This document shows positions 5,820 to 34,542 of a stretch of DNA of 64,000 nt, one piece after another (positions within the stretch are counted from its first letter, which is position 1; each line of letters begins with the position of its first letter). Where the stretch lies: positions 69,626,001-69,690,000 of the forward strand of contig OZ320318.1 of NCBI GenBank assembly GCA_976226885.1, written 5' to 3'. The notes beneath the pieces were generated by a model, which was not told the origin of the DNA, searched no databases, and saw only the letters and a list, made by a program, of their open reading frames with translations. The translations under genes were made by a program, and so were the position numbers. This DNA is from Iphione sp. A-MEVVRFRX5 (Eukaryota).

Positions 5820-6624
5820 CAGTCTGAAATGAAGGAAAATAGGACATAGACATTAATAAATTATAACTACAGATATCAAGCAAAAGCTTCAATTAAGATC
5901 ACAAGCCTTTGATCTAGCAGCTTCTAGTAATAATAATATCTTTTATCAATATTATCTTCATTCTTGGTGTTACTATGGTGTAGACCCCCGCAACGGACAC
6001 CCGGGCACAGCAGACAACCCCTATAATGGACGCCTTGGAAACAGTCCCAAACAAAAACAAGCAAATAATACGTTTACAACAGGCCTGACACAGCGGACAA
6101 TCATGGACAGTGGGCACCCAGCTCTGGACAGTCCGAAACACTGATTTTACAGGATTTTCAGCAGATAGACAAAGACTTCAAATTCATTTTCAAAGGTAGA
6201 CATGAATAACCACTGTGGAGAAGGTGTTGTCACGCAGATTTGGGGCTTCAGAGAGACTTCTGAAGTCATTTTGAAAGGTAGACATGAATAACTCCTTTGG
6301 ATGAGGTGTATATGATAGAGAGAGAGTGAGAAGTGAATATCATGCCAGGTTTGAACCCCAGCTACCTTGCTTAAACTTCGTAGACAGAGAGAGAAAAGGG
6401 GTAGCTCTGACACAACGAATACCCACAAAAATGGATGCTTTAGCTATGTCCATGGTGGAGGGGTTCCACTGTACTGTGAAAGAGTAATCACTGTACTGTG
6501 AAGTAGTAATCAACAATATATTCCATGGAAAATGAGCCAATCAAAACATGTAATTTATCCATGCTTTAATATATAACATGATACATTATAATGTGACATT
6601 AGTTTGTAGGCAATTTATTCACAA

Positions 6625-9600
6625 CTATCTGTACAGTTTTTGAAATGACTGCAGGAAGACCACTGGCTTCTCATAATGAGAAGATGCCTTGGACAATTTA
6701 ATGAATTATGAGTATAAAGAATGATCTCAGAGACTTTCATATAACTGAAAGAAATATTTACTTTACTTTACTTACAGTTGCTTGTTTCCCCCTCCACCTT
6801 CGTCTCTCTCTCCCCTGGCCTCTGCCTCTGTCTTCCCTTCTCCACTGGCCTCTGCCTCTGTGACTTGGCCTCTGCCTCTGTGTTTGGTGACTCCAGCGGC
6901 CTCTTTCCGGGCGGAAGAAAGGCCGCTGGAGTTCAGTTGCTCCTTGTGCAGTCGACCTGGAGTGCTGATAATAACATATTTAGATTAGAGGGGTAAACGA
7001 AAGGGAAAAAGAAAGAATGGTAGTAAGCTACCCCAGGAGGATATGGAAGATCCCTGTCATATGATAGGTGAATATATTCCTGGTAAAAGATACAATGAAA
7101 TGAAAATGAAAGGAAAGATGGAAATGTTGACTGAGTGGGGCAGACAGGAAAGTAAGAAAGGAAGAGAGAAGGAGGAAGAGACAAAAAGAGGAATACTTAT
7201 ACATATGTGACTCTTTCTGCTTATCCCTCTATATATAGATAAATCCATCGATGTGATCGACAATATTTGTAAGATCCCTCAGATGTTAGGTTAGAAAAGG
7301 GCTGTGCCAGGTGACAAGACAGGAGGGGGCCACTATATAATCAGAACTGTTGTTCCAATAATCCAGGCACAATCCCCTGGGACGGAATTTTTTTTCAGAG
7401 TAACGTCTTTCAATGATAGAGAAGTTTAGACTAATATATGACCAAAAATGTCAATGTGACCACTTATGCTCAGAACATAGAGGAGCTTGCAAAACTACAT
7501 TTGACTGTATGTACATAGATTGGGAACATAATAAAAATACATGCCTCTGTTATATGGCTAGTAATAATACTAGCCATGCGGCCAATCGTGTCAGCAGTCG
7601 GGTGGACTCCCCGGTCATCTATAAATGACCGGGGGTCCACCATCAACCCTGTAGGGTCCATGAAGGCCCGGTGTAGCCTTACACAGGCTACACCGGGCAT
7701 GTCCTCGATTTTTCTGGAAAAAAGAGAGAGAAGGCGAGCATGTTTCAGATTTAAATACACTTTATTGGTTACATTAAAAGAATTATATTTTTAATATCCC
7801 ATCATTTCCCCTAGTTATTTTCTCTATATTGTAAATTGTAATCCCTCCCTCCAATAAACAATATGATGAAAATGATAATGATACATCCACTGATAAGATA
7901 CTGTTAATAAAAAATATCATGAATTTTTGCATGTTTACAGTTATACAGGAGACTCCCTCCCTGCGGACGCGTCTCCAATGCGGACGCGTCTCAAATCCGG
8001 ACGATTTGACGCAGAACGAACTGTTTTCCTATAGTTAACCATAATGAGCTAACGTCTCGAATGCGGACGGCAAAATTTAGGGGACGCCTCCCTCTGGACA
8101 CCTCCTAGACCCCTCTCAGAAGTCATTTTCAAAGGTTTTTGAGCGAATTTGGGGTGTTGTCGCGCGAATTTGGGGCCCTAGAGAGGCTCTCACACCCTGG
8201 AGAGGGAGGTGGGAGAGGTAGGGGGTGTCAACGGCGACCTCTCTGATGTCTCTCACACCCTGGAGAGGGAGGTACACATGTAGATATAAATAACAAATTC
8301 AGTACTTTTAGGACTTTTACTGGTCAAATTCAGTACTTTTAGGACTTTTACTGGTAAAATTCAATACTTTTAGGACTTTTACTGGTCAAATTCAGTACTT
8401 TTAGGACTTTTACTGGTCAAATTCAGCACTTATTGTTGTAGAGAGAGAAGGAGAAAGGGATTTCATTTTCTAGTTTGACCCCCGGTCTGTATGTACCCCA
8501 CGTCTCCAATGCGGCCACGCCTCAAATGCGGACGATTTGAGGCAGAACGAAGGGTGTCCGGAATCGAGGGAGTCTACTGTACTTGTAATACATGCTCAGT
8601 TGACTTTGCTATAGGCAACCACTACCAGGACTTATTTTGAGTTAACAACCATTTCATTGGGGAGAACTAAACAAGATACCAAATATGGACAGAAAAGACC
8701 AATGTTTCAATAGCTGCAAATCATGAATGTAATAACTCAGTACAATGAATTCAAGACTGACTCACTGACCTGTTAAATTATAAGAAAAATTATTACCTTT
8801 TCAACACCCTCAAAGCGAGGGGCTGTACATCGAGGCGGGGGCATACAGTGGCCACCGCCACCGTCATGCCCCTCTCTTTGGCCTATATATAATGAACAGG
8901 ATAAAAAAGAAATCAATGTAAAACAGCAATAAAATACAATATATGCTTAAAGAATGTGCAAAATTTGACATAAATAACAGAAAGTAAATTGATATTATAT
9001 TCAAACAGGAATGAAAAATTAATCTATTGATTCAATAAATTTCTCAAGATTATAGCAATACATGTATTGTATACTGAAGCTCTATTTAATAGAGAGCATT
9101 AATGGCTCAGACAAAAAAAAAAATAGGCCCCTGCCACTTTTACACTGTCTGGTGCCTGCATATAATGGAGGTCAAGGTCATCTGCTAGACACTGATTATA
9201 AACAGATTATCTCTCCAATGAAAACATATTTATGCATTAATTATCGTAGCTTTGCAGTGAGTAAGGGAATTTAAATACTTTACTCACCTCCTCTGCCAGA
9301 CGGTTAATGTTCTTAAACACTTCATCTGGGTGCTTGCCCTGGGCGAGGTCATTCCCACCCAGGGCTATTACTACATGTCTGTAGTAATTGAAGTTAATCT
9401 TCGCTTTCTTAGCTGTCAAGCCAGACTGGGAGAGGTTCGCGATGCGAACCCCTTCCAGTCTGGCTATGACTGAATCACCATACACAGCTGAGACCTGCAA
9501 AAAAAAAAAGAAACATGAAAGATTGACCTCATATATATACATGTGCAACTTCAACATATGAACGACAGCAGTTTTTGTACAATAGTAGCACTTTTGACAG

Positions 9601-12600
9601 ACTAATCTCAAAGATAATTTTTGCTTAAAGTTTGGTGGAAATACATCAAATGCAAGTAAACTTATTCAGTATAAACTCTTAGAATAAATAAAGGTACTAA
9701 TTGTATGTTGCAAAACCTAAGAGGTAAGATTAGTAAGGTTAATGCAGGAAGGGTATATGGAAAATTGAAATGAAGGAGAGGGATAGTGTTCTCTAATAAC
9801 TTAACTCTTATAACTTCACAGATTTATTCTATGTTCTCTAATAGCACGGTTTAAGTAGGGAGAAAGAAGGGAAATGGTGCTGTCACCTGGGGTGAAACAG
9901 TATTCAACTAAGTGCAGATGGAGAAAGAAGAAAGTACATAAAAGTAACAAAAATGCCATCAATTAAAGGGCAACTCCACATATAATTTTCAAATTAAAAC
10001 TATACCAATAGTACTATCACATTTTCATTTGGACTTCACAAATGTTTAGCAGAATTAAAAGGTAAACACAGTAAAAGTAAAATTTAGCAGTAGAAATTAT
10101 GCAATACTAATTATGAGTTCATAACAATATATGTTAGATCACTAGTGTATTACATGCACATATTAAAATGTTAACAATTGCTTGGTCACCAAGCCCTCCT
10201 TTAGCTACTCACTGGTGTGATGTTATATTCTATTCTCAAAAAAATTTTTCCCGTCAATTATTTACTTTTTATGTATTATATATATGCTTATTATGTATAA
10301 AAAGTTTATTGCTTGTTAACCCCACTTCATATGCATGTGATTTCATTAATAGATGATAAAAATATTTTATTACTAATAATGTGACATAAAAAAGGAATAC
10401 ATAAGACTACATAAGCCTAATGCAATATTAGTACTTATAATACTACAATGAAAACATATTATAACTACATTATACTAAATTCATCTAAAAACTTAATGCA
10501 AAAGGGAAAGAATGAAGAAAATCAGCAAGTCCAATCATATTTGAAGTATGGTCTGGTTCAGTAGAGGCGTCATCATTGAGGAAGAACTGAGGGACTGATG
10601 AAAATGAAAAATATAAAGAAAACAATCAGAACAATTCAAAATGATATGACAAATCAAAACAATTCAAAACAAATCTGAATAATCAGAGTACAGTGGAGCG
10701 CCTCTAATAGGGACACCCTCTGTTCTTCATCAAACGGTCCCTATTAGAGGCTCGTCCCTATTAGAGACATTGTGGCCTGAGGCCACTCTGTAAAAATTAT
10801 CATGTAGAATAGGGTGTAAGGCCATGTTTTACTTACACACAAAAAGGACAGGGAAGTCTGGGGGAAGTCCTTGATTGAAATCTTCATGCCTCTCTCTCAT
10901 ACCTCTGATCTGTCCCTCTATCTGACACCTATGGGTATTGTCCTCCTGGCAGCTCTTTACCTCTCCATGTAGCACCTATATCTCTCACCATTGTCCTCCT
11001 GGCAGTCCTCTACCTCTCGAGGTCGCGCTAATACCTCACACTTATAGGTATTATCCTCCTGGCAGCCCTCTACCCCTCCTGGTCGCGCTTATACCTCACA
11101 CCTATGGGTATTATCCTCCTGCAGTCTCCCTACCCTTTCGGGTCACAAATATCCCTGACACTTCTGAGCTGTCCCTATGGAGGCACTTCACCCTCCAGCC
11201 TGTCCCTATTGGAGACCTTAAACATTATTATATAGGAAATATTTTGGTTCTGGCTTGAACTGTTGCTATTAGAGGCGTGTCCCTATTGGGGACGTGTCTC
11301 TATGAAGGCTCTCAACTGTATTGTAATACAGTAATCAAACATCAATGAATTTCACATTAAAGTCAAGGTAAAGGTGTGAAAAGCATGTGTCTGATGGTGT
11401 CTTCACTGTGTAATACTGTTGGATTGGAATCCATTTGTCAGGCAGGGGATAACTATCAGAATGTGTTGGGTCCTACTTGTCTATTTCAGTACTAAATAAA
11501 TAGAATTAAATCCCCTGCATGCAATAAACTACACCTTAAGCATCCACCCTTCACCTTCTGTAGATGCTTGCAAATTACAACGATTGCTCGTTTCCCCATG
11601 ATCATACTTATTGGGTGTGTGTCCAATCTCATCTTTTTAGATGTAGGGATACCCTACACACATGCCAACCGTGTGAAACAGGCCTCTGTATAAATGTGAT
11701 AAACTAAGTGACATCCTGTGTAGTGCCCCACTAACTCAATTCAGTGCATAAGAAATATACATCAATATTCAACAAACCACACCATGTGCACTTATCTTAA
11801 CCTCCAACACTACCTACATGACAAGCTTTTCAATAGAGCATCATTGTGTAGGAGACATGCTAAGTGATAGTCTGTGTGAAGTCCTACTCATCTTCTACTA
11901 CTCAAAGTTGATACTTATGGCAGTGGAGAGGGTTATGGGGCTTCCAATATCATCTTCTGTAGAATAACTAAGTTTGTCTGGTTGGCATGGTTGAGATAGG
12001 AGGTGGCTAATGATCGTGAACCTGAATTTGGGCTGATCTATGCCTTGGTAATTAGCTTTCTTAAAGTTTCCGAATGTGGAAAATCTGCATGGTTTTATCA
12101 CCCAAGGCAAAGTATATCAATTGGTATGGGAAATACTTTTACTTACTATTGATGCCGAGTCCTGTGGTGGTGTTGGTGGTGGTGGTGGCAGGGTCGGAGT
12201 AGCTCCAGGGTTGCTGATCTCCTATATGACAACAATGAAGGCAAAATAGTTATTATTGTCATCTAGATTCCGTAGTGCAGATGCTTGCAAAGTACAATTC
12301 CTGACACCTTACCCACATTACTAATAATGTGACATAAAAGCAAGGAATACATAAGACTACATGAGCCTAATGTAAAATTAGTACTTATAATACTACAATG
12401 AAAACATATTGTTCACCTCGAATGAAGTGACATGACTCCTTGAGGTACAGTTTGACTGAAGTTTAGTCCTAGAAGGAACAGATAAGAATGGCAACAAACC
12501 CCACCAGCTCAGTCCCTTATATAGTCAGTGTTAACCTGGCTGGAGAGGCACACACTCTGGCAGACTCTGGCAACTCCGGGCCAACCACGGCCAACGACGG

Positions 12601-15600
12601 TGAAATGTATGACTCCACTGAACTCCAGCCGGAGTTAACACTAAACTTGGGCACAGGCCCAACACTGCCCCCCTCTAAGCTGGCTCAGTCCCTGAGTCCA
12701 ATTATGACAAAGAACATTACCAACCACATGTATTTTTTCAACTTGTCATTCAAAATGTCTAAGGCAACAAGGCCGGCACAGGCCAACAACTTCAACTGCT
12801 GGTAAGGGGGAACCAGTACAGGTTCTCAAACTTATAACAACCCCCAGGCCAGTACAGGCCTAACATGTACTTTATCCCTGAAAATACTGCAACGATAATC
12901 AGGTCAGAAGAGACCAACAGAGGTACATGTAACTGCAACAGTGGGACCAATACCAGTCCCCAACTGAACTTCTTAGTAACTGGGGGTCAGTACAGACCCC
13001 CAACACTTTCAGAGGGAGGGTCCAGTACAGGTCCCTGAGCAACCTCTACCTAGGTGTGTGGGGTGGGTGCCAATTTGATGATGTAGTCCGCCTCCCACCG
13101 CACAGTCGTCCGCATTTCATCAAGACGGGTAGCTGCAAACTGCCAGTAGCATCGCTTAAAAGCACTCCTTGTTCGTCTCTGCTGCTGTGAGGCCCAGCCT
13201 CTAGTCCTGCAGCATCCTGTGGTGTGGGGGGTCCGGAGCCACAGCTCGGCAGATTGCCCGTGCGTAACCCAGGCACCCCCCTCAATGGCCTCCACTTCAG
13301 TCCTCCCCTCGGCTGTGGCCAGGTGCCAACTGAGTGGGGGCTCTGCTGTTGACATTAACACCAGTCCTCCTGCCCACTGGCAGACCGCAGCAGGTACCTC
13401 CGGGTCAGCCCACCTCAGCTGACGTCTGGCAATCCTTGCCACCGGCATACGATTGCTCAAGGGGCGGTCCACTCGGCTCGCAGACGCCTGGGTCTGCCTC
13501 TGCTGTTCCGTCCCCATGGTTGCAGCTATGGTAGTCTTGGTGTTCCTAGCTGGAGTTAACGTTGCCAGCGGGGGTGTCATCCTGGTAATCACCATGACTG
13601 GTGTGGCGCCCAACTCAGGGGGCACCAACCGCTGTCCTAGGTCCACCTGGGGGGTCCTTGGCCTAACTGGTGCTGACATGGTGCCCGACCTGGTGGGGGT
13701 ACAGCCTGGGTAATCGCAGTGGTGGCAACAGGTGTGGCGCCCAACTCGACGGCGCCAACTGACGTCCCAGGTCCGCCTGGGAGGTTCCTTGGCCTTGCCA
13801 ACACCAGCTGGGTGCCATGGGCCAACAACTGTGGAGGAGGGGCAGCCTGAGCAGCTATGGCAGCAGTAACGGGTGTGGAGCCCGGCTTGTGGGGGGTTAA
13901 CCGTTGTCCCAGATCCACCTGCACAGTCCCTGGACTGGCCATCTCGGTTCCATCCTTCTGCATGGCCATGGCCTCATCCGTCGACTTCCCGCCGGTCTCC
14001 GCCCGGGTGGTTGGTGGAGGCAGGGTGGACCAGACGGTTCCTCCTCGTCCTCCGGCCGGACCATGGCCGGAGCAGCTGCTGGAGTCACAGCTGGACCCCA
14101 GGCGGAGTCCGCAGCTGTCTCCAGCCGGTCTCTGGCAGAGAGGGTTCCTCTTCCATCACTGTCTCCTTCTACCACCTCCGCGATGGTGGCCAGCAGGGCC
14201 ACCACCTCGGTCTCTAACGGTGTATCAAGCATGGGTGGAGCTCCACTGTCCTGACAGTCCTCGAAGTGGGGAGTGTTGAGGGACTGGGCATAACGGACGT
14301 TGCCCACCACGGTGCCCTGGTCTTCGCCCAGCCCTCGCTCTGACGGCAACACAGCTCTACCACCATTTCATTCTCTTGCTGTGCCCGCTTCAGGTCTTCT
14401 GCTGCCCCGGCCACTGTCCGGACGACGGCCACGGTCCCCTGCAGCACTTCCTCTTCTTCTGCCTCGGCTCCATCATGGCCACAGTGAGGGCAGACCTGGC
14501 GTGACAGCCCATCAACATTGCCGTGCTTCCTGCCTGGTTGGTAGACAATCCCCAAATTGTAGCAGTGAATTTCTTCCAACCATCTTGCCAGTTGTCCCTG
14601 GGGCTCACTGAAGTTGCACAGCCATCAAAGGAAGCTGTGGTCCGTCCTGATGATGATATGTGCACCCCCAACATAAGACCTGAAATTCCTTAGGCTGAAA
14701 ATGACTGCCAACAGCTCCTTGCAGGTCACACAGTAGTTCCATTCGGGTCGGGTAAGGCTGCGGCTGGCATACACCAGGACCCGCTCCTCCCCATCCTGCT
14801 CCTGAGACAAGACCGCTCCATTCTCTTGTGCTAAGGCTTCAGTGTCCAGGGTCATCTGTCCTTCTGCCCACGCGTAGGTTAAGATCAAGGCTGTAACCAA
14901 CTTCTCCTTGAGGGTCTGGAAAGCGTCCTCTCACTCTGACGTCCAATAGAAGGCCTCCCCCTTCTCCAGCAAATAATGTGGCGGGCTGGCAGCGTTGGAT
15001 GAAGCTGCGGTAGCATGAACACAGACCAATGAAGCCCATCAACTCCATGAGACACTGTGGTGCTGGCCAATCTTCTACCACTCGGACCTTGGACTGGGTC
15101 CAGATTGATCCCTGCTGCCGATACTCGGTGCCCCAGGTACACAACCTCAGTCTGGAACAGCTGGCATTCTCTGGTTTGATCTTCAGGCCTGCCTCCCTCA
15201 GCTGCTGGAATACTTCCGCCAGTTGGTCCATCATATCAGGGACCAAATAGAGTAGGGAGGGCCTTCCAAATAGACCAGACAAGTGGTCCCCACGAAACCC
15301 CAGAGCACCACCTCCATGAGCCGCTCAAACGTGGATGGGGCATCGCAAAGCCCCAACAGCATCACCTTGAATTGGTAGAGGCCTCCTGGAGTACACATTG
15401 CAGTCTTTTCTGGATTTGCATGGTGCATCTGGACCTGCCAGTATCCACTGGCCAAGTCCAGAGCTGAAAAGTACTTCGCCCCTTCAAGGGCATCCAGGGT
15501 GTCGCCGATCCTTGGAAGTGGGTATGCATCCTTCTTTGTGATTCTGTTCAGGGCCCAGTAGTCGATACAGAATCGCCACGACTGGTCCTTCTTCTTCACT

Positions 15601-18600
15601 AGGACGACAGGAGATGCCCAGGGGCTGGTCAACGGTTCCAGTACTCCCCAATCCAACATCTTCTGGACTTCCCGCTGCACAGCTGCATGCTTGGATGGGG
15701 GCAGTCGACGAACTCGATGCGTATTGGTGCATGCCCATGGACATCAACCCTGTGCTGCACCTCTCCGGTACTACCAAGTGGCTCTCCCTCCTCCTGAAAG
15801 CACATCCGATGCTCCTCCAACATCTGGCCCACCAGGCCATGCTCTTCTCCCGTCAAGATCCCCAGGAGACTTGCCAGCAAGCACTGCTCCAGACTCCGTG
15901 GTCTCCTTGACCTCCTGCGCCAACAGCACTTGACCACACTCTTCCGGAAGTTCCACCAACTGTGTTTGCCCCACTACAGTTCCTCACCACAGACAGCAAC
16001 CCAGGTATCAAGGGTTAGCCGACTCCACCACTCTGGTAGTTGCTCCCACGTCGTACAGCATCCTCGCCAGGTTCATTCGAGAATGGCCTGCCCACTCAGG
16101 GGCAGCCTCCAGCAGCACCACTCCTCTGATGCCCTTCAGTTCTGGCCATCTCACTCTGGCCTCATTGGTGCTCCTTCCTTCAAGCTGGCACCCAAACTCA
16201 GAGAGCTGCCCTCTCGGTGTCCACTTGTGCCTTCCACTGCCTCAGGGTGTCGAGGCCCAGGATCACTGGACAGTCGATGCTTGCAACCCACGCCTCCACC
16301 CAGAGCTCCACTTCTCTAGTCCCTTATATAGTCAGTGTTAACCTGGCTGGAGAGGCACAAACTCCAGCAGACTCTGGCAATTCTGGGCAAACCCCGGCGA
16401 AATGTATGACTCTGCTGAACTCCGGTCTGAGTTAACAATAAACTTGGGCACAGGCCAAACACTATGATAAAAATACTATTTTGTAAGAAAAAATAAGAAC
16501 AATACAAAAAAAAAATGTAGTTTTGCAACCCAGATAATGAAGGAAAACACGACATAGACGTGCAGTTCAAGAAAACTTGTTCCAACCTGTATGCTGCCAC
16601 TTTGTGGTGGTTTTGTCTAATTACAGGTGATAAACTAAGTGAAATCCTTTGTAGCGCTCAACTAATTCAATTCAGTGCATAAGGAAAGACGCAGCAGGTC
16701 CCCAGTACAGGGGCCAGAGAGTACAGCTAGCTTTACCAAATACTTGGGTGTCCCCAAGTGACACAATAAATCCCCAGTACAGGGGTCAGAGAGTACAGCT
16801 AACTTTACCAGATGTTTGGGTGTCCCCAAACGACACAGCAGGTCCCCAGTACAGGGGCCAGTGAGTACACTAACTACACTACCTACTACAATAGAACCTC
16901 ATTATATAGGTGACATGCTAAGTGATAGTCTGTGTGAAGTCCTACTTATCTTCTTCAGTACTTAAAAATCAAAATAAATGTAGATGCATCCATCCTATGG
17001 CTCAAAGTTAATGCTTGTGGTAGTGGGAAGGGTTATGGGGCTTCCAATATCATCTTCTGTAGAATCACTAAGTTTGGCTGGTTGGCATGGTTGAGATAGG
17101 AGGTGGCTAGTGATCGTGAACCTTAATTTGGGCTGACCTACGCGTTGGTTATTAGATTTCTTAAAATTTCCACATGTGGTAAATCTGCCTGGTTTAATCA
17201 CACAAGGCATAGTATATCAATTGGTATGGGAAATACTTTTACTTACTCTCAATCCCAAGACCTGGGGTGGTGGTGGTGTTGGCTCAGCCCCAGTGACTCC
17301 AAGGTTGCTGGGTATGTCCTGTATGACAACAATGCAGACAAAATAGTTATTATTATCATCTAGGTGCAGTTTTGCAGATGCTTGCAAAGTACAACTACTG
17401 ACACATTGCCCACATGCTAACCATGTCAAATGAACATCTTTATATAGTTGACACAGTAAGTGGTAGTCTATGTGAGGCCCTACTCATCCAATTCGGTACT
17501 CAAAAAAAAGAAAATAAATAAATGCCTTACATGAAGCAAAGTACACAAGATGCATCCACCCTAACCTCTCACCCCACTCACATCTCTTACTTGTCAACCA
17601 AAACTCATTATACAGGGCCAGTGCTAAGTGATAGTCTGTGTGGGACCATACTCTTCAGTACTAAATAGAAATAAATCCCCTGCATGTAACAAACTACACT
17701 TTATGCACTTGCCCTAGTCCCCCCTCCCACACACACACACTCATAGCACACCACTTACTATATATGCATAGAAATATATGGTTGTGTGGAGCAGTAATTT
17801 AGTCTGCACAAAATTACTCAGCATGCTGAGCATGTAAGTTTACTCCTCACATAAGCTCTGCACATGATGCTTGTGTGCATTTATACTCAGTTGCGTTGTT
17901 ACCACTCAGGAATAAACATTTAAACTTTACTTGGTAGTCTGATTCAACTATGTTAAGGTCTGGCCATAATAATAAGTACACACTGAGGTAGTAATACAGA
18001 TGTACTGGCACTGACTGCACCTACCCCTACCCGAACTGGCAAATGTACATCACATAATTTATATGCTGGGAAATATATAAACACACTGAGGTAGTAATAC
18101 AGATGTATTGGTAGTGACTTTACCTACCCCTAACCTGTCACACGCACAGCACATAATATGTATACAGAAAAATATATCTCCACACTGAGATAGTACAACA
18201 TACATGTACAGGTACTCTCACTGACCTCACCTACCCTTACCCTGAGCATCACATGCACAACACATAATTTATATGCAGAGAAATATATCTATACACTGAG
18301 GCGGTAATACAGATGTACAGCATAGACTTCACCTACCCCTACCATAACTGACATACATCCACCACATAATATGCATGCACAGAGAAATTTACACACTGAG
18401 ATAGTACAACATACATGTACAGGTACTCTCACTGACCTCACCTATCCCTACCCTGAGAATCACATGCACAAAACATAATTTATATGCTGGGAAATATATA
18501 AACACACTTAGGTAGTAATACAGATGTATTGGTAGTGACTTTACCTATACCTACCCTGACACATGCACACCACATAATATATATGTAGAAAAAAATATAT

Positions 18601-20477
18601 TTACACACTGAGATAGTACTACATACATGCACAGGTACTCTCACTGACTTCACCTACCCCTACCCTGAGCATTACATGCACAAAACATAATTTATATGTT
18701 GGGAAATATATAAACACACTGAGGTAGTAATACAGATGTATTGGTAGTGACTTTACCTACCCCTACCCTGACATATGCACACTGCATAATATATATGTAG
18801 AAAAAAATATATTTACACACTGAGATAGTACTACATACATGCACAGGTACTCTCACTGACTTCACCTTCCCCTGCCCTGAGCATCACATGCACAACACGT
18901 AATTTATATGCAGAGAACAATTACAAATATCGTTTGTTGCTAATTTTCTCTTCAAAGGAATAGTTTCATTTAGCCGTTCTGTGAACAACAATCTTTCTCA
19001 CTCTGTCAGCATTGGAATGCATTTTACAGCATAAAAATTGGATCATTATTGATGAAAGAGTAATGAAGATCTCCACTTCCTGTGTTGCCTGCCATTTCAA
19101 ACTAGAAGCAGGAAGATATAGGACAGAGTATGTCAATTGGTATGGGAAGTACTTTTACTTACCCTGGATGTGGAGGCATGAGGTGGTGGTGGTGGTGGAG
19201 TTGCATTTTCATTGGTCTTCTGCTCCTGTATGACAACAATGCAGGCAAAAAAGTTATTATCAACTTTATGTTCAGCAGTGCAGATGCTTGCGAAAAACAA
19301 CTACTGACAACCTAACCACATGCTAACCTTGTCAAATGAGCATCTTTATATAGTTGAGTAGCTAAGTGATAGTCTATGTGAGGCCCTACTCATCCACTGA
19401 CTTCACCTGCCCCTACCCTGACTATCAAATACACTCAATATATAATTTATATGCAGAGAAATATATCTACACACTGAGTTAATAATACTGATGTATTGGC
19501 AGTGACCTCACCTAAACTAACCCTTACTATCACATGCAGAACACATAATCTATATGCAGAAAAATATATCTCCACACTGAGGTAGTAATACAGATGTATT
19601 GGCAGTGACTTTACCTACCCCTACCTTGCCACATGCACAGCACATAATATGTATGCAGAAAAATATATCTCCACACTGAGGTATATATGCACAGGTACTG
19701 TCACTGACCTCACCTACCCCCACCCTGACCATCACATGCACAACACATAATTTATATGCAAAGAAATATATCCACACTCCGAGCTAGTAACAGAGATGTA
19801 TTGGCAGTGACTTTACCTACCCCTACCATAACTGACACACATCCACCACGTAATATGCATGCACAGAGAAATATACTTACACACTGAGATAGTACAACAT
19901 ACATGTACAGGTACTGTCACTGACCTCACCTACCCCTACCCTGAGCATCACTTGCACAACACATAATTTATATGCAGAGAAATATATCTACACACTGAGG
20001 TAGTAATACAGATGTACAGCACTGACTTCACCTAATCCTACCCTGTCAGATGCACACTGCATAATATATATGCAGAAAAATATATCTCCACACGGAGATA
20101 GTACTACATAGTTGACAAAATCACTGGTAATCGACTGTAATCCCCTACCCCTACCCTGTCTGTTACATGTACACATTACACAGATCTTTTGTTGCTAATT
20201 TTCTCCTAAAAGGAATAGTTTCATGTAGTCATTCTGTGAACAACAATCTTTCTCACTCTGTCAGCATTTGAATGCATTTTACAGCATAAAAATCGGATCA
20301 TTATTGATGAAATACTAATGAAGATCTCAACTTACAAACTAGAAGCGGGAAGATACAAGACAGAGTATGTCAATTGGTATGGGAAGTACTTTTACTTACC
20401 CTTGGTGAGGAGGCATGAGGTGGTGGTGGTGGTGATGTTGCGAGAGGCAAAGACTCACTTTCCATGGTCTTCTGCTC
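6625..20477 (-). CDS. Multi-exon gene, N-terminus not found: Pro-rich repeat exons + SGNH/GDSL hydrolase-fold domain + RG-rich tail (about 320 aa rebuilt)
   Basis: Minus-strand exons: 20477-20400, 19225-19163, 17318-17247, 12221-12147, 9494-9288, 8882-8797, 7713-7545, 6964-6776, 6648-6625. Phases are compatible and the frame is open to TAG at 6627-6625, with AATAAA at 6619-6614. All introns are GT-AG except one GC-AG (donor after 7545). Confidence 0.75.
6776..6964 (-). CDS. Arg/Gly-rich exon
   Basis: Boundaries ttattatcag|CAC ... ACT|gtaagt, 189 nt, phase 0/0. HSRSTAQGATELQRPFFRPERGRWSHQTQRQRPSHRGRGQWRREDRGRGQGRERRRWRGKQAT. Confidence 0.65.
7545..7713 (-). CDS. SGNH domain exon C (block V-like, DDRGVHP)
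   Basis: Acceptor ctctcttttttccag|A AAA ATC. KIEDMPGVACVRLHRAFMDPTGLMVDPRSFIDDRGVHPTADTIGRMASIITSHITE. The 3' end depends on a GC donor (AG|gcatgt). Confidence 0.75.
7946..8579. mobile_element. pogo/Tigger-type MITE
   Basis: TA|caggagactccctc ... gagggagtctactg|TA. Subterminal gcggacgcgtctc repeats and internal 31-bp tandem repeats. Confidence 0.85.
8797..8882 (-). CDS. SGNH domain exon B
   Basis: Boundaries tatatag|GCC ... AAA AG|gtaata. AKERGMTVAVATVCPRLDVQPLALRVLK. Phase 0 to 2 bridges exons A and C exactly. Confidence 0.8.
9288..9494 (-). CDS. SGNH domain exon A (blocks I-III)
   Basis: Boundaries ttttttgcag|GTC ... GAG|gtgagt, 207 nt. VSAVYGDSVIARLEGVRIANLSQSG...HVVIALGGNDL carries the GDS, SG and GGND motifs. 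Confidence 0.85.
10691..11318. mobile_element. Tc1/mariner-pogo-type MITE with internal ~60-bp repeats
   Basis: TA|cagtggagcgcctct ... ggctctcaactg|TA, with repeated ccctattagag motifs. Confidence 0.7.
12410..16461 (-). mobile_element. Degenerate Ty3/Gypsy LTR retrotransposon with internal deletions
   Basis: RT (WASPVVLVKKKD...RFCIDY..LN..TKKDAYPLPRI...ALDLASGYWQV, 15231-15680) and RNase H (14625-14900). 3' LTR about 12410-12664 (TG...CA) is preceded on the minus strand by the PPT agaggggggcag (12665-12676). Partial 5' LTR at 16318-16461. Many frameshifts; no recognisable integrase core, gag or PBS. Confidence 0.9.
16690..16870. repeat. Short tandem repeat, about 77 bp x 2.5
   Basis: tccccagtacagggg(c/t)cag(a/t)gagtaca occurs three times. 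Confidence 0.8.
17970..18915. repeat. Diverged ~105-bp satellite with ~211-bp dimeric higher-order structure (same family as 31650-32603)
   Basis: Alternating units gaggtagtaatacagatgtattgg and gagatagtac(a/t)acatacatg. Shared core ctttacctacccctaccctgac. Confidence 0.85.
19405..20165. repeat. Second diverged array of the same satellite
   Basis: Repeated acactgaggtagtaatacagatgta ... cctacccctaccctg units. Confidence 0.85.
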
Positions 20478-21823: not shown

Positions 21824-23611
21824 TTAAATTAAAAATAAGGATGCAACAAACACCATTTAAAGCTATAAGAAATCAGAAAAACACTAGCCTCGTCGTAAAA
21901 AATTCATCCCCCATTCTCTTCTAAGAGCGGGGGATGAAACATATACAAAACACACCATTTTAAAGCTAATTATCCAAGGAAAATCCTCAGCCATGACAGA
22001 AATGTGTGAACACCTTAATTCAAAATGGAAAATATGCCACTGTATATTGCCATATATTAACATATACATCATTCTCTTTCTTGTATATAAGTTAAAGTAC
22101 TGGTACATGTACAGGACAGAAAAGGGACTAATATTTCATGTAACTGGATTGCATTTTTTTATTCTGTATCACAGATATAATAATATATATGGTACAACAT
22201 TACATTGCTCATAAATTCATTCATAAATACAAGAGACAGATTGTGCATAAATTAGAAACATCAGTCAGCATCATAATGACATATTTCTTGTGACCTGCTC
22301 TTTTTTTGTGCACAACGGAACCGTTGTGCACAAAAAATACACATGGATATGAAATCATTTCAAGAATTGGCAGTGCGATAGAAAATAATCGTAGGGATTA
22401 ACAAAAATATTCGGCGGCCGTTGTGCGTAAAAAAATTGTCAGTCAGCGTTGTGCGTAACAAGGTGGCCGCCGTTGTGCACAAAATAATACAAGTTGATGT
22501 GAAATCATTAAATAACAATGGGAAAGTGTTATAAATAAAATGTAGTTTTTACAAGTAGTGCGAGGTAGGGATCAGTTAAAAGTATGCGTCTGCGGGCCCA
22601 GTCGTCTGGATACCCTAGCCTGTATGATTTGGCGACGTTTCGCCCTCAAACCGTTTCGCCCTCGCCGTTTCGCCCTCAAACCAGTTCGCCCTCAAGACGT
22701 TTCGCCCTCAACCAGAAAAAAATCCTTTTCCATTATCAATGAAGTAATTATGCAGTGTAATTGTGATATGTAATGGCAAAGATTTACCACTGGCAAAGAT
22801 TTACTATTATGAGTGTGTTTTTCTTCCTAGACGAAATGATTGAGGTAGCTTAACAAAGGTGAAGGTCACTGACAGCAATACTGGCATGTGGTCTGTAGCC
22901 TTAGTAAAATTATCACTGTTTTCTTCATACTTGTCCGATTTGAATGCAACAAAATGCATTTGAAAGCCTAGAATCTAAGGAATACAATGATAGTGATTAT
23001 TTTCATATAGAGCCGTTATTTTGAGATAGAATTGACGAAAACGTAATCGCGATGTAGCGGCCGAGTTGTTGTCAGTGTTGGTTAGGGTTGGTGGTAGGGT
23101 ATGCAGTTCTAGAGAACAGGGCACCGTCGACTGTCCTAGGACAGTCGAAAACAAAAGAACAAGAAGTGGTAGTAGTTGACAGTCATTAGCCTACCAGTAC
23201 TCACAAACACGCAGAGTGGAGTATACACGATTTAGTCAATATTAACATACAATAATTAGACAAAGGTGAAGCGAGTAAAGGGTGCTAAAATGCATATAAG
23301 CGTCCAGCTTGAATGTCATGACTAGAGTTCTTGACTTGAATATGTGGGGTGGGTGCATGGTATCCATCCACAGGCAAGTGAAGGACTGGTTCTGCATTCA
23401 GAACAATCATTGCCAATGACTGTCGTCAGCAGCAGCGGCAAGGAGGCCAGGGAACTGCTGAGGGGTGTTAGGGTGAACTAGCAGTGTAATAAACGCCTCC
23501 ACTGGTAACCGATTGTTTGTTGTAATGATTACGACTTTAGTGGTTATGGTCAGCATTTATAGTCACAGACAATTCTCCTGGTTTACCATCTTTTAACTTA
23601 GTAAGTACTGA

Positions 23612-24183
23612 TGGATCATATCAACCAACAGGTTCGCTCATTTCAACCACAATGGATCATATTGACCAGTGGCTCATTTCGACCGTGGCTCATATCGACT
23701 ATACATCAGTGCAATGTATGTGAGAGGGGTGGCCGACTTGACTGACGGCGGAGTATGTCAGTGGCCCAGTCAGTCGGCGGCCGACAGTGTAGGTGGCCGA
23801 GTCAGTCAGCAGCCTAGTCATCCTATCACTGTGACGGCCACAGGGAGGGCCCAGGGTGATGTAGCGGTAGGAGAGGGGGAATGCCTATCAGTAGCCAACA
23901 GTCAGTAGCTGACAAATTTTCACAGCAACCAGTGTGACAGGCCCCCGGTGCAGACCTCAGGCACCTCGTTGGAGGTTCGCCCTAGCCTGTTCAAATCCCT
24001 GATGGCATTAGGTTCCAATGTGGTGGCCAAGTGGTGGGGGAAACAGCCCAATAAAAAATGCCCTGCTGATGTGGACAATACAATACAATGGAATCGTCAA
24101 GAGCTGGGACACTCTCAGAGGACCACAATGGACTGTCATTCCCCCAGGGTATGGTTGATATGAGCCATGGTCAATATGATCCA
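23612..24183. mobile_element. Nested non-autonomous element with tggatcata/ggctcata subterminal inverted repeats, inside the MULE
   Basis: Left tggatcatatcaacc..., right ...ggtcaatatgatcca. No TSD confirmed. Confidence 0.5.
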
Positions 24184-25995
24184 AGCAGTGTGTTGTGTTG
24201 CCACCTTCACACTCCTTGACATACCCTCTAATATAGGCCTACTCATAATTATGTCTCGAGATATATTATGTACTGTTATGCGCGCGTTCGCTACAAAGAC
24301 TCGTCACAACAGTTGCAATTCAGAGATGTTTATTCCATGAACGAACCCCAGCGACTGGCACCCCCCATCTCCAGCTCACTCCTTATATAATGGTTACTGT
24401 GGAGCATTCTCGCACACATTTACCCACACACCGCACCCCGCATGACTCATTTTCCCACACATCTATCTGCGCACGTATCACTACATCTCCTACACACCGC
24501 ACACTAATATCTGTACCTACACATACTACCCTGTGTCTCTACCAATATACAGCCTTACATACTCATCACTCACTACACCTGGCCCCTCCTATGCATACTC
24601 ACTGCTCATCTTCCACTACCCTGTATTACACATATATATGCACACATACACTACCCACTACCTTTCTCCTGTGACACACCAAGCACTGTATTGTGTTCCT
24701 GACTACACACTCTGAGCCACACACCCCACCCAATACCCTATCTCTACCTAGACCTTTCTGCGCTACCCAATCATCACTATAGTGTATACGTCATATACCA
24801 ATTGCACATCATGATATGTCCAGATATATTATGTAGTATACATGTCTTTATTGATTAGCCAGTCTCACTCTCAAGTGTAGGCTAGGGTCACATATATCTG
24901 TAGCACTACTACATATGTATTACTACCTGTAGTCGTGCCTATATCAATGTATGCAATATTAATGTGTCCTACCCAGTATAATATGGCAAGATATAGCATG
25001 TACATAGTACACATGTATTTGTCAGTCTCACACCCCAGTGAATATGTTCTCTCCCCATCTGTAGGCATAGACAGATATACATCCCTCAATACCTTGTTTC
25101 CCTACCTATATACTATTATTAAGATGTATATAGATATATTATGTACTGTCATGAGTTTAACACCAAAGTATTATCAGAAAAAAAATCTGTCCATAGGTAA
25201 ATCCCCTTTGCAGTTTTTATTCAATGAAGTCAGCAAGGTAACTGACAACAGACTTAAAAGACTTTGTTCTTTTCACTACTAGATGTGCCTATGCATTATC
25301 ATTACAATGAGGTAAGGTTTTCACAAAAGATACTGACATTTCTTTTCTACATATGGCTATATGGCATATATACATACATACATACATACATACTACTCAT
25401 TATTCACTACCTATGTATACAGTGTGTATAAAATCATGTAAACTCTACCATGAAATGCAATGTCTATGGTATCTCTTCACATTATCAGTGGAGGTCATAT
25501 CTGCTTATAGTGCTGTTATGTGAAAGTGGATGATATGACATTCATTTATTGCAAGGGGTAGTGTTTCTGACATGTTTAGATATATTGTGTAGTGTTGCAA
25601 GTCCTCCACCAAAGCATACTCAAAATAAAGAATGCTGACAAGTAAATCCAACTTGAAATGTTTATTCAGTGAAGTTGCAAAAGTTAAATGACCACAGGCA
25701 ACAAAAACAGCAGGTGTATATATACACTTTGTGCAGTGTCAGGTGATTACCACAGCACCTGAAGGATTATAGACCTTTGACATGGCCTTGAAAAAGGCTC
25801 TGCCCTTCCCTCTATACATAGCAATCACATCCCTTGCAATAGTAATATACATGTCTCAGTCCATCCTAATTCAGTGTAGTACAGGGTTAGTTAAAAGTAG
25901 TACTGCAAAATACATGTATGCATTACTGCTTGTAGCCCTACCCATTATTAGGATCATGTCTCAATGTAATATGTTTCCATCAGTCTCACTTCAGG

Positions 25996-26175
25996 TGACT
26001 AGCTCAGTACAACTGTGTCTCCACTGGCACGAACTGGGAGATTCATTCAGCCATCAGGATCCTGCTGCCCAGCGAACTTGTCAAGCATGTTGTCAGTGAG
26101 GGATGCAAGCTGTCACAAAGTATACCAGCTTCAAGTGGGCACACAGCTCACAATAAAATGGCCCTTTTCAGGGCC
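25996..26175 (+). pseudogene. Histone H2B C-terminal fragment with 3' UTR and histone stem-loop
   Basis: [35 protein letters not shown], frameshift, then AVTKYTSFK, aligns to H2B [47 protein letters not shown]. Perfect GGCCCT-TTTC-AGGGCC stem-loop at 26160-26175. Confidence 0.9.
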
Positions 26176-28922
26176 CCATTCTCGCTCGAGAGTTTGAGAT
26201 CAGAAAATGATGCTGATTTGCTGGTTTCTTTTATTTGCTTCTGATGGGCATTCTGGCAAAGGAAAGGGACACATACTTGCATGCATACAGTACATACACC
26301 CCTCCACTACTATCTGTGAACAACTATATACATACATGCTATCCACTACCACGCAATAACCACTACCCTCTGCCTCAACCTTACTACTCCCTATCCACTA
26401 CCTATGTATTCAATGTATAAAGTACTAACATGAAATGAATTGTTCCACACCAACTGCTATGTTGTATTGCTTCCTACTCACTCCAGAGATACACTTACGT
26501 ATAGGCCTACCCATAAAAATGTCTCCAGATATATTATATACTACAAGCGCCTTTTGCGAGAGTGAGAGAGAGACAGACAGAGAGAGACAGAGAGAGAGAG
26601 GGGGGAGAGAGGGTTGTAAAATAGTACATTGTACTTTGACCCCTCTTGCAAGTTAACAACCCTCGGTTCTGCTTGATTGAACAGAGGGGTAGGAATACAC
26701 CACTCTGTGTAGAAAGTAGGGCCACATATGTCATATGTTTTTTTTTGTAATTTAAGCATTTTACATACACAATAGATGAATAATCATCGTTCTTTTGTCC
26801 TACAATATCATAATGCATGAAGTACTAACAAAAATAATGTATTTTGGTATAATCACATCAGAATGACATGGCAGCCCCCATGGCCGAGACTACTTTTGGG
26901 CAACATTTCATATAGGTAGTGTAATTATGTATCAGTCATTCTCACTCCTTGATGTAGGATAGGGCCGGATATATTTGTTGTACTCACACATACATGCTGT
27001 TCCCTATCCACTAGCCCATGTCCCTACCTATACACATACACCTATACACCACTCAATAACCTTTGTCTGTATCATCCCTGACCCTACTACCCTCTCTTCC
27101 TATACACATCATCAGCTTTACATACCTGTGCATACATGGATAGAATGAATATTGCTGAGTAACTCTTTGCTATGATATGCATAGTTAAGGTGATAGCCAA
27201 TCAGATGTGCACAGCTCAATATCTATATATTATCCATATATAGTACATATACACATATATCTGTCTCTACCCACACATGTATAAAACAGTACTTAGTATG
27301 TTAAAAATGATACCGAGTGTTAAATAATTGCTCACTATGTACAGTAGTATAATTATAATTGCTCACTATGTACAGTAGTATAATTACAGGAACATATCAA
27401 AGAACACAAACAAATTGAGTTAATAGCAAAGAACTATTACTTTATTGACAACAAGTAGCACTATAATCATACAGTATTATAACTATTATATACAATTACT
27501 GGCCACTTATGCACAGGCCTAAGATAGTATTGCCAATGTGAGTCATCATTATACTAATACTCATAATTATATTTTTCATTAGTGGTAATATGAGGTGGTA
27601 TTGTAGCTGCCTGATGAGTACTGCTGATGCCAATGATGGATTTACTGTGCCGGAGGGGATCAATGTAGTTTGCAAGATGCTGGAGTGTCTATAAAACAGC
27701 AAAACACAATTCAAATAATCAGTGGTAACAAAAGCATGAGTACAATTACTGAAGCACTAACAGGCCGTATTCTTTTAGATCTATAAAACTATTGATCAAT
27801 TCATTAATATTCTCCTCCATGAGAATTAAAGTTTTTCAAAATTAAACAATCAGTGAAGCAAAAAATATATACAGTGCATTACAGATTAGGTAGAAAATGA
27901 GTACTTTGTGTATACATCACTGTAATTACAGTTATCACATTGATAAAATGATATTACATAAATATGAGAAACAGTCAAAATAGGACAGGAGAAACACATT
28001 TTATTATGGTGGGAACATCCATCCACCTGTATGATATACAGGTCATGCATAGTTAAGACAGGACACCATGTCACCATATACATATTTTATTATGGTGGGG
28101 AAAAACCATCCACCTGTTCAGTTTATACAAGTGTGGGTTAAAAACCAATGTAACAAGTGGTAACAAAAGCAATTACTGACTAGCACAACTAACTGACAGC
28201 CCCTCCTTCAAACCTCCCAAACTGTTCCAAGCTACTTCCCTTTCCTCTGGTGTGGCTGGAGGTACTGTCTGTTGTATACACTATATAATATTTGTTAAGG
28301 CCTGTAAACAGAGAGCCTGTTAGTGTCCACTGTAGATGAATGTCCGTAATATTTCCTGTCCATAGTAAGGGTTGTCCACTGTAGCTAGTTTTCTGTAGAG
28401 TGAGATTCCAGTGTATATGATACATAGAACAGGTAAGACAGGATACCATGGGAGAGGAAAAATATATTTTATTGTAGTGGGCAATTCCATCCATCCATAT
28501 GATACACAGGCAGAATAGGTACAACAGGACTCCATGGGACAAGACAAACATATTTTATTCTGGTGGGAAAAATTCATCCACCAGTTTATCATACACATGC
28601 AGTTACATAAATAGTCACAATCATGCTGCACTAAAGAAAATAGATCAATAAGCAAATAAATTTGTAAAAGATTTAAAGGAATTACCTGAAACCTGAAATA
28701 AGTGAAACATATATATTACCCATCACAGACACACCAGTTATAGAATATCACAATCATACTGTGGTAAATGAATTTGATAATTAAAATAAGTAAATGTAAG
28801 ATATAAGTAATTACCTGAAAGCTGAAATAAGATAATAAGTGAGACATTGCATAACAAAATACTTATCGTAGTCTGAAATCAGAAAAAATCCCTGAACAGT
28901 GATCTCAGTCTTGTCCGCTTGT

Positions 28923-31553: not shown

Positions 31554-31649
31554 GCTGAAAGCTAAACAAAAAAAAAAATTTATATGGTGGTGTGCATTAA
31601 GGTAGGCATAGTAATGAGAGTAATGACTAACACAAGTATACTACATAAT

Positions 31650-32603
31650 ACACCACATCATATATATGCCAGAAAATATATGTACACATTGAGGTAGTAA
31701 TGAATATGTAGTGGCACTGACTTTACCTACCCCTACCCTGACTCATACATGTACACCACATCATATATGTGCCAGAAAATATATGTACACATTGAGGTAG
31801 TAATGAATATGTAGTGGCACTGACTTTACCTACCCCTTCCCTGACTCATACATGTACACTACATCATATATGTGCCAGAAAATATATGTACACATTGAGG
31901 TAGTAATGAATATGTAGTGGCACTGACTTTACCTACCCCTACCCTGACTCATACATGTACACCACATCATATATATGCCAGAAAATATATGTACACATTG
32001 AGGTAGTAATGAATATGTAGTGGCACTGACTTTACCTACCCCTACCCTGACTCATACATGTACACCACATCATATATGTGCCAGAAAATATATGTACACA
32101 TTGAGGTAGTAATGAATATGTAGTGGCACTGACTTTACCTACCCCTACCCTGACTCATACATGTACACCACATCATATATGTGCCAGAAAATATATGTAC
32201 ACATTGAGGTAGTAATGAATATGTAGTGGCACTGACTTTACCTACCCCTACCCTGACTCATACATGTACACCACATCATATATATGCCAGAAAATATATG
32301 TACACATTGAGGTAGTAATGAATATGTAGTGGCACTGACTTTACCTACCCCTACCCTGACTCATACATGTACACCACATCATATATGTGCCAGAAAATAT
32401 ATGTACACATTGAGGTAGTAATGAATATGTAGTGGCACTGACTTTACCTACCCCTTCCCTGACTCATACATGTACACCACATCATATATATGCCAGAAAA
32501 TATATGTACACATTGAGGTAGTAATGAATATGTAGTGGCACTGACTTTACCTACCCCTACCCTGACTCATACATGTACACCACATCATATATATGCCAGA
32601 AAA
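31650..32603. repeat. Homogeneous 103-bp tandem satellite, about 9.3 copies
   Basis: tgtacacatt recurs at 31681, 31784 and 31990 (period 103). Copies differ at only about 2 positions. Confidence 0.95.
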
Positions 32604-33607
32604 TCATACAAGGACACCATGTAATATATATGGAGAAAAATACACACAAGACATTGAAGAAATATAAGTATAAATAATCTGACAAAAATGTTATATTTAA
32701 TCAAAGACTGGTGTAGAAAATACTTACATTATGTACTTTCGGAGAGACTGGCAGTTGTAGACACTTGAATAAGCCTTGGGAACTTGGAAAACCTGGAGAG
32801 GCTGTAGAGGTTAACTTCAGATGGACTGCGCTTGACAGAATACCTTAAGTGAACTGGCTGGACGTCAGGAGTGGACCTGTTTTTATCCCCTCCTGGGGCA
32901 GAATGCTCAACGTAAAAGCAACTCACTTCTACTCAAGAGATACTCATTATGTGCCCCACTGGTACACATGAACAACTCACCACATTCACACCACATTCTC
33001 TTTCATGTACCATGTTAGTTGCTAACACCCCTCTGAAGTTCCCCGGCCTCCCTGCCCGGCGACTGCACAGCCCGTGACCATTCGCGCTAACACCCCTCTG
33101 TAGTTCCCCGGCCACCCTGCCCGGCAGCGGCGTCACCCGGGCGAGTTATCCCGGCTACCGCCGCATGTATAGCGGCGTTGTGCGTAAATTACGCGATTTC
33201 CGTCGGCGGACTTTTCGCGATAAAGTAATATGCGTATGTACTATTTTCCAAGTTAATTGTATTCCTTGCATCATGAGCTTCAAAATGATAGCTGACACTT
33301 GTAAATCGGCCAGTTATTAGTGAAATTATGGTGGGACTACTTGCTAGTGTAGGCAGACAGCCATTGTGCGAAGGGGGCAAGGCAGGAGTCAGTAAACTTT
33401 GTCAACATGCTTCCAACCCTTTGGTTAGTCACAATTCGAGGATATATGACATGAATACTATGGATGCTTCACAGTAGGTAGGTTTTAACATCATTTGGCA
33501 TTACTTTTATTGGATGAGGGCGAAATGTCTTGAGGGCGAACTGGTTTGAGGACGAAACGGCGAGGGCGAAACGGTTTGAGGACGAAACATCGCTATTCGG
33601 CCTGTAT

Positions 33608-34540: not shown

Positions 34541-34542
34541 AC

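Follow-up and report, generated by a model that had tools for sequence, protein, structure and literature searches.

SGNH-type esterases recur beside RNA biology, in the ORF1 (first open reading frame) proteins of long interspersed nuclear elements (LINEs), in Oskar and among viral esterases, and we know of no substrate or role that has been established for any RNA-associated member. In the esterase-class LINE ZfL2-1, the ORF1 protein (ORF1p) carries an SGNH esterase together with a presumed RNA-binding peptide rich in arginine (PMC3905857), and in the OSK domain of insect Oskar (PF17182) the hydrolytic activity has been lost (PMC3905857). Here, we analyzed a stretch of 64,000 nucleotides from Iphione sp. 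(C13:69626001-69690000, hereafter the window) in a 1.18-Gb animal assembly, the minus strand of which carries a predicted gene that joins a proline-rich head, an SGNH core and a tail rich in arginine and glycine (RG). Comparison with its relatives indicates that this locus is very probably a member of a genuine spliced family, that is, of a multi-copy, intron-containing animal gene family. Overall, we consider it fairly probable that the window holds one copy of a lineage-specific multi-exon gene belonging to this family. The exon structure, paralogue conservation, copy structure and motif content that we demonstrate below have comparative, not transcriptional, support.

The predicted protein resembles the esterase-class LINE ORF1p (PMC3905857) in pairing an SGNH domain with an arginine-rich peptide, in being strongly basic and in having no structured RNA-binding domain. 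It differs from ORF1p in several respects: three introns within the domain are conserved, no ORF encoding apurinic endonuclease and reverse transcriptase (APE-RT) lies downstream, a proline-rich head takes the place of the coiled coil, and the basic peptide is C-terminal rather than N-terminal to the esterase. The sole reverse transcriptase nearby belongs to a nested remnant of the long terminal repeat (LTR) type, and a coiled coil was judged incompatible with the composition of the 101-aa head, 28% of which is proline. The introns, the missing ORF2 and the proline-rich head therefore exclude membership in the esterase-class LINE ORF1p group. OSK and the locus have in common an SGNH-like sequence within a protein that is suspected to act together with RNA; unlike OSK, the family keeps the Ser and the His. 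The Pfam OSK match was weak (E 0.05-0.1), its 12-13 bits lying far below the cut-off of 27, the predicted protein showed no LOTUS domain, and the proposal that the protein converges on Oskar or acts in ribonucleoprotein (RNP) granules is speculation.

The predicted gene and its splice signals

According to the original prediction, nine minus-strand exons encode a complete SGNH domain between proline repeats and an RG-rich end. We found all of these elements in place, joined in frame and bounded by canonical splice signals (Table 1; a slash marks an exon boundary). Together with a candidate first exon, the ten segments add up to 978 nt with a single terminal stop and encode 325 aa. The predicted product has an isoelectric point (pI) of 10.5, to which the head contributes a pI of 4.9, the core of 154 aa (the 154 codons of exons A, B and C joined in frame) a pI of 9.5, and the tail, with 27% Arg, a pI of 12.0. 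No signal peptide was detected in the predicted product of ~325 aa. The gene spans ~27 kb of the minus strand because a Mutator-like element (MULE), an LTR-retrotransposon remnant, a satellite and a miniature inverted-repeat transposable element (MITE) lie in its introns.

Candidate exon 1 sits within the sole CpG-rich stretch near the gene; the observed/expected CpG ratio is 0-0.4 at 20500-22100, compared with the values given in Table 1 for the putative promoter region. A 30-mer across the ATG and donor of this exon is identical in three of the six close copies of the locus described below (each named after its chromosome; C13, the window itself, C17 and C11), despite a flank in C11 that is only 88% identical.

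Each proline mini-exon encodes poly-proline and is bounded by a pyrimidine tract ending in cag/ and by a perfect /gtaagt. Sequence conservation of the module ends exactly at cag/ and restarts exactly at /gtaagtaaaagta, and the exon body in between is hypervariable. All 13 mini-exons of the six close copies have a length that is a multiple of three and an open frame 0. Their indels are in frame and include some of 2-5 codons outside the CCA repeat, and the counterparts of the 12147-12221 mini-exon in C17, C10 and C2 likewise vary by in-frame indels. We rejected a dispersed short interspersed nuclear element (SINE) as the source of the mini-exons, since the module is found nowhere but in the copies of the unit and at three partial loci, and the limits of its variable part coincide exactly with splice signals. 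An incomplete additional copy of the unit's upstream part was also observed at C17:18031881-18047265, where mini-exon modules and the 20700-21836 region are present at 94% identity; neither exon A nor exon C had a match within that interval.

Table 1 Features of the predicted gene and of the elements nested in its introns, in window coordinates
Feature	Position	Strand	Details
Putative CpG-rich promoter region and upstream end of the duplicated unit	33608..33883	-	CpG observed/expected 0.9-1.2
Candidate exon 1	33772..33786	-	ATG GCT GAC AGA ACT/gtaagt (MADRT), phase 0; inferred
MULE DNA transposon	22617..33607	.	~11 kb; intron 1, this copy only; C17 joins 22600 to 33610 across ~184 bp
Proline mini-exon, type EQKT...PPPPP...	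20400..20477	-	78 nt, phase 0-0
Satellite, 103/212 bp	17948..20108	.	Introns between mini-exons; same place in C17, C10, C2, C11
Proline mini-exon	19163..19225	-	63 nt, phase 0-0
Proline mini-exon, type D/E..SNLG..PPPP..QVL..R	17247..17318	-	72 nt, phase 0-0
LTR-retrotransposon remnant	12339..16888	-	Between two mini-exons; RVT_1 2e-15, RT_RNaseH 3e-21
Proline mini-exon, type E..SNPGAT..PPPP..QDS.SI	12147..12221	-	75 nt, phase 0-0
Exon A	9288..9494	-	69 codons; ttgcag/...GAG/gtgagt; SGNH blocks I (GDS), II (SG), III (GGND)
Exon B	8797..8882	-	86 nt; atatag/...AAG/gtaata; family-specific T(V/I)CPR motif (TVCPR here); ends phase 2
MITE	7947..8579	.	633 bp, terminal inverted repeats; B/C intron; absent from C17, C10, C2, C4; ends and empty site seen
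Exon C	7545..7713	-	169 nt; ttccag/; block V region DDRGVHP with catalytic His; donor GAG/GCATGT
Exon D	6776..6964	-	63 codons; Arg/Gly/Gln/Trp-rich; two RGRG motifs; phase 0-0
Exon E	6625..6648	-	SFQKLYR and TAG stop, at the end coordinate of the original prediction
AATAAA polyadenylation signal	6614..6619	-	Kept in 6/6 copies

An SGNH core with TesA-like motifs

A profile search of the PDB with exon A returned SGNH enzymes as all of its best 13 matches (TesA, E 0.013), aligned block for block, and the neighbours of the sequence in a protein language model were GDSL/SGNH clusters throughout. Pfam Lipase_GDSL_2 matched eight of eight family members tested, with a best E of 2.8e-4. Exon A alone scored 19-20 bits against a cut-off of 32.9, a shortfall that arises because one exon was scanned at a time; exons B and C gave no Pfam match when scanned alone. 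The GDS of block I, which holds the nucleophile Ser, is invariant in 8/8 aligned family members and aligns with the GDS of TesA, being lost only in the dead C11 copy (GD-stop). No family member departs from S22, G25 or GGND, and these residues match blocks II and III of TesA in the alignment.

The original prediction held that the putative catalytic Ser and His are kept; Ser, the Gly and Asn of the oxyanion hole, and His are all present, with the His found in all intact copies and paralogues. The D-x3-H spacing reported for block V is correct for the six-copy subfamily, which reads D-D-R-G-V-H with R at -3; block V in the distant paralogues introduced below reads D-G-V-H (pC2b, pC4b and pC13b) or G-G-V-H (pC10b). 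Enzymes of the TesA/TAP type (SGNH/GDSL, PF13472) share with the core a compact single domain in which blocks I (GDS), II (S-x-x-G) and III (GGND) agree residue for residue, as well as the His of block V. The core differs from them in being split over three exons in an animal genome, in its length of only 154 aa, in the Arg found at the block V Asp position in this subfamily, and in its low-complexity flanks, proline-rich on one side and RG-rich on the other.

A family with a conserved exon structure

Searching this genome with exon A gave 24 matches at no fewer than 24 loci, 19 of the 24 without a stop, and exon C matches lie ~1-1.6 kb downstream of exon A matches. The family analysis covered the six close copies and four distant paralogues with 39-51% identity: pC2b (C2:72.8M), pC4b (C4:12.6M), pC13b (C13:97.8M) and pC10b (C10:18.9M). 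In all four paralogues, the boundaries and phases of exons A, B and C are the same and the introns are unalignable. Three of them (pC2b, pC4b and pC10b) also have an RG/RGG-rich exon of 186-231 nt, situated 0.7-0.8 kb past exon C, in phase 0-0 and with canonical splice sites. The pC2b/pC4b pair further shows a short last exon starting with S-x-Q-K and followed by AATAAA, which in pC2b reads tag/STQK..., stop, AATAAA.

Because this RG-rich exon is kept in composition, place and phase and not in sequence, exon D is probably translated in the RG frame, although a second frame of exon D is also open; its phase 0 likewise places the exon C donor at phase 0. At the same phase as the GC donor of exon C, the distant paralogues have AAG/gtatgt. 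Exon boundaries, phases, an RG-rich exon and a short terminal exon shared at 39-51% identity bear out the architecture of a genuine intron-containing gene, and the RG tail, singled out by the original prediction, emerges as a conserved family feature that fits a link to RNA or RNPs.

The region 8580-9923, taken as the core of the duplicated unit, occurs in exactly six copies (C13, C17, C10, C4, C2 and C11) on six chromosomes, with 83-94% DNA identity. In four of the six, exons A to E and with them all nine downstream exons are open and have intact splice sites. All intact copies retain the splice sites, losses being confined to the dead C11 copy, and the exon E acceptor ctgcag/ is kept in 6/6. 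Exon D of C17 varies by in-frame indels only. In C11, exon C is triplicated in tandem (C11:15452447-15453575; 84%, 73% and 75% identity).

Exon divergence and the case for decay

A number of observations weigh against a lineage-specific multi-exon gene at this locus. Two of the six copies are broken, C10 by a stop in exon D and C11 by several stops and a lost acceptor, and the introns of the window's copy have received insertions of 11 kb and 4.5 kb. To preserve the RG frame, exon C has to be spliced at a GC donor, and at CC in the C2 copy; the position of the catalytic Asp is occupied by Arg in this subfamily; variable sites of exon D are without third-position bias; and we infer exon 1 and the use of the mini-exons. 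A phmmer search with exon A against 1.84 billion representative proteins gave 0 matches, as did a homologue search with the 124-aa open frame among proteins of 68-217 aa. A genome-wide search for processed copies, using a 30-nt pattern across the exon A/B junction with ≤3 mismatches, also gave 0 matches.

The divergence of the exons belongs to the same side of the account. Between recent duplicates (window 7000-9923 compared with C17, C10, C2 and C4), exons diverge ~2x faster than introns. CpG sites make up ~10% of exon sites and ~1% of intron sites, and we rejected a CpG effect as the full cause of the excess, since it accounts for part only: non-CpG divergence is still ~1.8x higher in exons (p = 0.01-0.09 in 9/10 pairs, which are non-independent). 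The pC2b/pC4b pair repeats the fast-exon pattern, with a proportion of synonymous differences (pS) of 0.195 against an intron divergence of 2-5%. Close copies show a ratio of nonsynonymous to synonymous substitution rates (dN/dS) of 0.14-0.43, and pC2b/pC4b one of 0.17. The low dN/dS, which the original prediction had proposed to compute, speaks for the gene, and exons no slower than introns among close copies speak against it. Fast exons combined with low dN/dS are not what purifying selection in its simple form would produce, nor what a plain pseudogene would show; contributions to the exon divergence could come from ectopic conversion between paralogues, from diversifying selection or from the hairpin process discussed below.

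Much of this evidence would also be expected if the family is or was real and this copy, perhaps with the whole six-copy subfamily, consisted of decaying, unexpressed pseudogenes. The GC or CC donor, the Arg in block V, the broken C10 and C11 copies, exons no better conserved than introns, and the MULE, LTR remnant and MITE in the introns of this copy all point in that direction, as does exon A itself, which lacks an ATG found at the corresponding position in three of the four distant paralogues. We nevertheless regard general decay as unlikely, given that 4/6 copies keep nine open downstream exons with intact splice sites, that dN/dS lies under 0.45, and that the indels in the 13 mini-exons and in exon D of C17 are all in frame. 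The exon-1 30-mer, moreover, is perfect even in C11, and hairpin stems are less variable than loops. The window's own copy may be expressed today or may be silent.

Duplication history of the six close copies

Homology between the copies extends over the introns and >12 kb of flank and passes the window start, and its upstream edge falls at ~33881-33883 in both C17 (99%) and C11 (88%). Insertions have since set the copies apart (Table 1). The MULE, the ORF of which (28926-30617) has Pfam MULE and FLYWCH matches, is present in the window's copy only, and the LTR remnant is absent in C17, C10 and C2, which pass from 12338 straight to the next module. From these private insertions it follows that the copies are DNA-level duplicates that have diverged since. 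As separate observations, the MITE has terminal inverted repeats reading AG[G/T]AGACTCCCTC... and an internal 31-bp tandem repeat, and the intronic satellite is ~72-76% similar to a satellite at 31650-32600 inside the MULE.

No transposase or reverse transcriptase of the unit's own was found in the ORF lists of the window, apart from those of nested elements, although a spliced gene would be missed in such lists. We therefore read the units as low-copy dispersed segmental duplications. The original prediction had associated many near-identical dispersed copies with transposon cargo, and that picture is only partly seen here: six copies are indeed spread over six chromosomes, yet they lie in large low-copy duplications whose ORF lists show no transposase or reverse transcriptase beyond those of nested elements.

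An insert of 2.3-2.9 kb was also observed at window position 9923/9925 in C17 (L016:500-3410), C10 and C2, in sense orientation within the intron that precedes exon A. Neither this window nor C11 has the insert, which shows no clear target-site duplication. Its ORFs end in H-x-x-R...Y, which is tyrosine-recombinase-like and suggests that the insert may be a Crypton; in C17, these recombinase-like ORFs had no Pfam match.

Such an insert, 430 bp upstream of exon A in three copies, raises the question of whether the gene is cargo or an accessory gene of a large DNA-level mobile element, in which case a unit of >17 kb (>34 kb here with its private insertions) would move and the protein would serve the element. 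The spread of six copies over six chromosomes at 83-94% identity including introns and flanks, the upstream edge at ~33883 shared by C17 and C11, and hairpin-dense exons reminiscent of the cis-acting signals of mobile elements and viruses are all compatible with this scenario. It nonetheless appears quite improbable to us: the ORF lists of the window hold no transposase, reverse transcriptase or recombinase save in nested elements (with the same reservation about spliced genes), copy number is very low, and the downstream extent varies between copies and is broken by large private insertions. In addition, the distant paralogues keep the same exon structure in unrelated flanks, with no recombinase within 10 kb.

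Hairpin-dense exons

Exons A to D (6776-9494, minus strand) carry arrays of near-perfect hairpins with stems of 9-22 bp. The folding energy of exon A is -104.5 kcal/mol, which relative to shuffled sequence corresponds to z -11.3; for exon C the values are -92.6 kcal/mol and z -9.9. When windows of 120 nt were moved along the gene, those centred on exons A to C and on the first half of exon D gave z values of -5 to -12, compared with about +1 to -3.6 in introns; the mini-exons are unstructured. The hairpin structure is kept in 6/6 copies, and variable sites in exon A are rarer in stems (14/152) than at unpaired positions (16/55; p = 7e-4). Two exon A hairpins, the first lying between blocks I and II and the second surrounding GGND, are kept in the distant paralogues, across which 13 pairs of exon A changed on both sides; none of 500 shuffles reached this number, and slid controls gave 2-5. 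Paralogue pC10b reaches z -8.7 independently. The hairpins of exon C, by comparison, are subfamily-specific and not kept in the distant paralogues. The D-D-R-G-V-H motif lies within one of these hairpins, and the unusual spacing of block V may thus have arisen as a side effect of complementarity between the two arms. Folding is nearly as good on one strand as on the other, which is compatible both with RNA-level selection and with DNA-level quasi-palindrome correction.

These properties invite the view that the main product of the hairpin-dense exons is a structured RNA, serving as a source of small RNAs or as a protein-binding platform, and that the reading frame is secondary or vestigial in this subfamily. 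Its appeal lies in the extreme z-scores of exons A and C beside introns near z 0 in the sliding scan, in structure retained by all six copies with stems varying less than unpaired positions, and in the 13 double-sided pair changes not matched by any shuffle. We hold it to be very unlikely, since SGNH catalytic motifs and an open frame persist in these exons among paralogues of 39-51% identity, since a DNA-level origin such as quasi-palindrome correction is compatible with folding on both strands, and since the exon C hairpins are not kept in distant paralogues. Stems of 9-22 bp are also short for canonical Dicer or Drosha substrates. A protein-coding, spliced gene with hairpin-dense exons remains our preferred reading.

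Relation to retroelement esterases

The genome is rich in LINEs with SGNH ORFs, which belong to the same superfamily as the family described here. Those ORFs, whether free-standing or fused to NADAR in ORF1, are intronless, 220-1120 aa long and adjacent to APE-RT, and their block I is TDS or SDS, not GDS; block V in the LINE esterases of this genome reads DGxHL. An example was observed at L036:1362-7342, a LINE whose first ORF of 1120 aa has NADAR and SGNH domains and is followed by an APE-RT ORF.

A hidden Markov model (HMM) of the family, run against seven LINE esterase ORFs and four long ORF1s of this genome, gave no match at E<=10. The suggestion in the original prediction of a domesticated retroelement esterase is accordingly not upheld: the family profile finds none of these LINE esterase ORFs, hhalign assigned a probability of 6%, and the best outside matches are bacterial-type TesA/GDSL enzymes. 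As for the signature of Ngaro and DIRS elements, a reverse transcriptase/RNase H and tyrosine recombinase belonging to the unit were not found in this copy, and the recombinase-like insert of C17, C10 and C2 is a separate intronic piece that is absent near the distant paralogues. LINE ORF1 or Ngaro cargo was rejected on the grounds of the introns, the lack of ORF2, the proline-rich head, the absence of profile kinship and the absence of a recombinase or reverse transcriptase of its own. Descent from a LINE ORF1 or from the hydrolase ORF of Ngaro, by way of host capture and a subsequent gain of introns, would draw on the parallel with the SGNH and arginine-rich design of esterase-class ORF1p (PMC3905857) and on the wealth of SGNH-bearing LINEs in this genome, and is nonetheless highly improbable in view of the profile and hhalign results, the differing motifs of blocks I and V, the bacterial-type nearest matches and the lack of any intronless intermediate among the loci found.

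Neighbouring features

The stretch from 33600 to 34600, with an observed/expected CpG ratio of ~1, lies between candidate exon 1 on the minus strand and a C2H2 zinc-finger ORF on the plus strand (34528-36354), and may be a shared divergent promoter. The zinc-finger gene itself is outside the duplicated unit. Two short high-copy elements were also noted, at 33907-34066 (~160 bp) and 21604-21822 (~220 bp). Each occurs on all chromosomes, in dozens of copies that are 80-93% identical, and they are probably MITEs or SINEs.

Discussion

We have described a predicted spliced family in which an SGNH core of TesA-like motifs is joined to an RG-rich tail, and of which the window probably holds one copy. 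What the protein does can be approached through its composition and by analogy, and an RNA-tethered intracellular esterase is a tentative suggestion that we consider possible though doubtful. In such a model, the protein would be an intracellular serine esterase or deacylase, held on RNA or RNP particles by its RG tail, and the poly-proline head would bind protein partners. It would work like the esterase and arginine-rich-peptide design of LINE ORF1p, with the difference that its gene is spliced and is spread through segmental duplication at the DNA level.

A more far-reaching reading, and one to which we assign a low likelihood, is that the SGNH-RG family carries a structural code laid over its coding sequence, with exons selected for arrays of covarying near-perfect hairpins. 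If so, the hairpins could be the protein's own RNA recognition or packaging signal, amounting to an ORF1-like cis-preference in a spliced gene, and the hypervariable proline cassettes, together with the fast exons, would point to an arms race, for instance with retroelements.

Exon-restricted covarying hairpins are rare in protein-coding exons. If those of this family are selected, they would be a clear case of overlapping constraints on protein and on RNA (or DNA) structure; if they are mutational, arising through quasi-palindrome correction, they would show how such a process reshapes an active-site motif such as D-x3-H. A spliced family that joins an SGNH core, seemingly active as judged from its motifs, to an RG tail would offer a way to test the role of an esterase on RNPs without the life cycle of a transposon.

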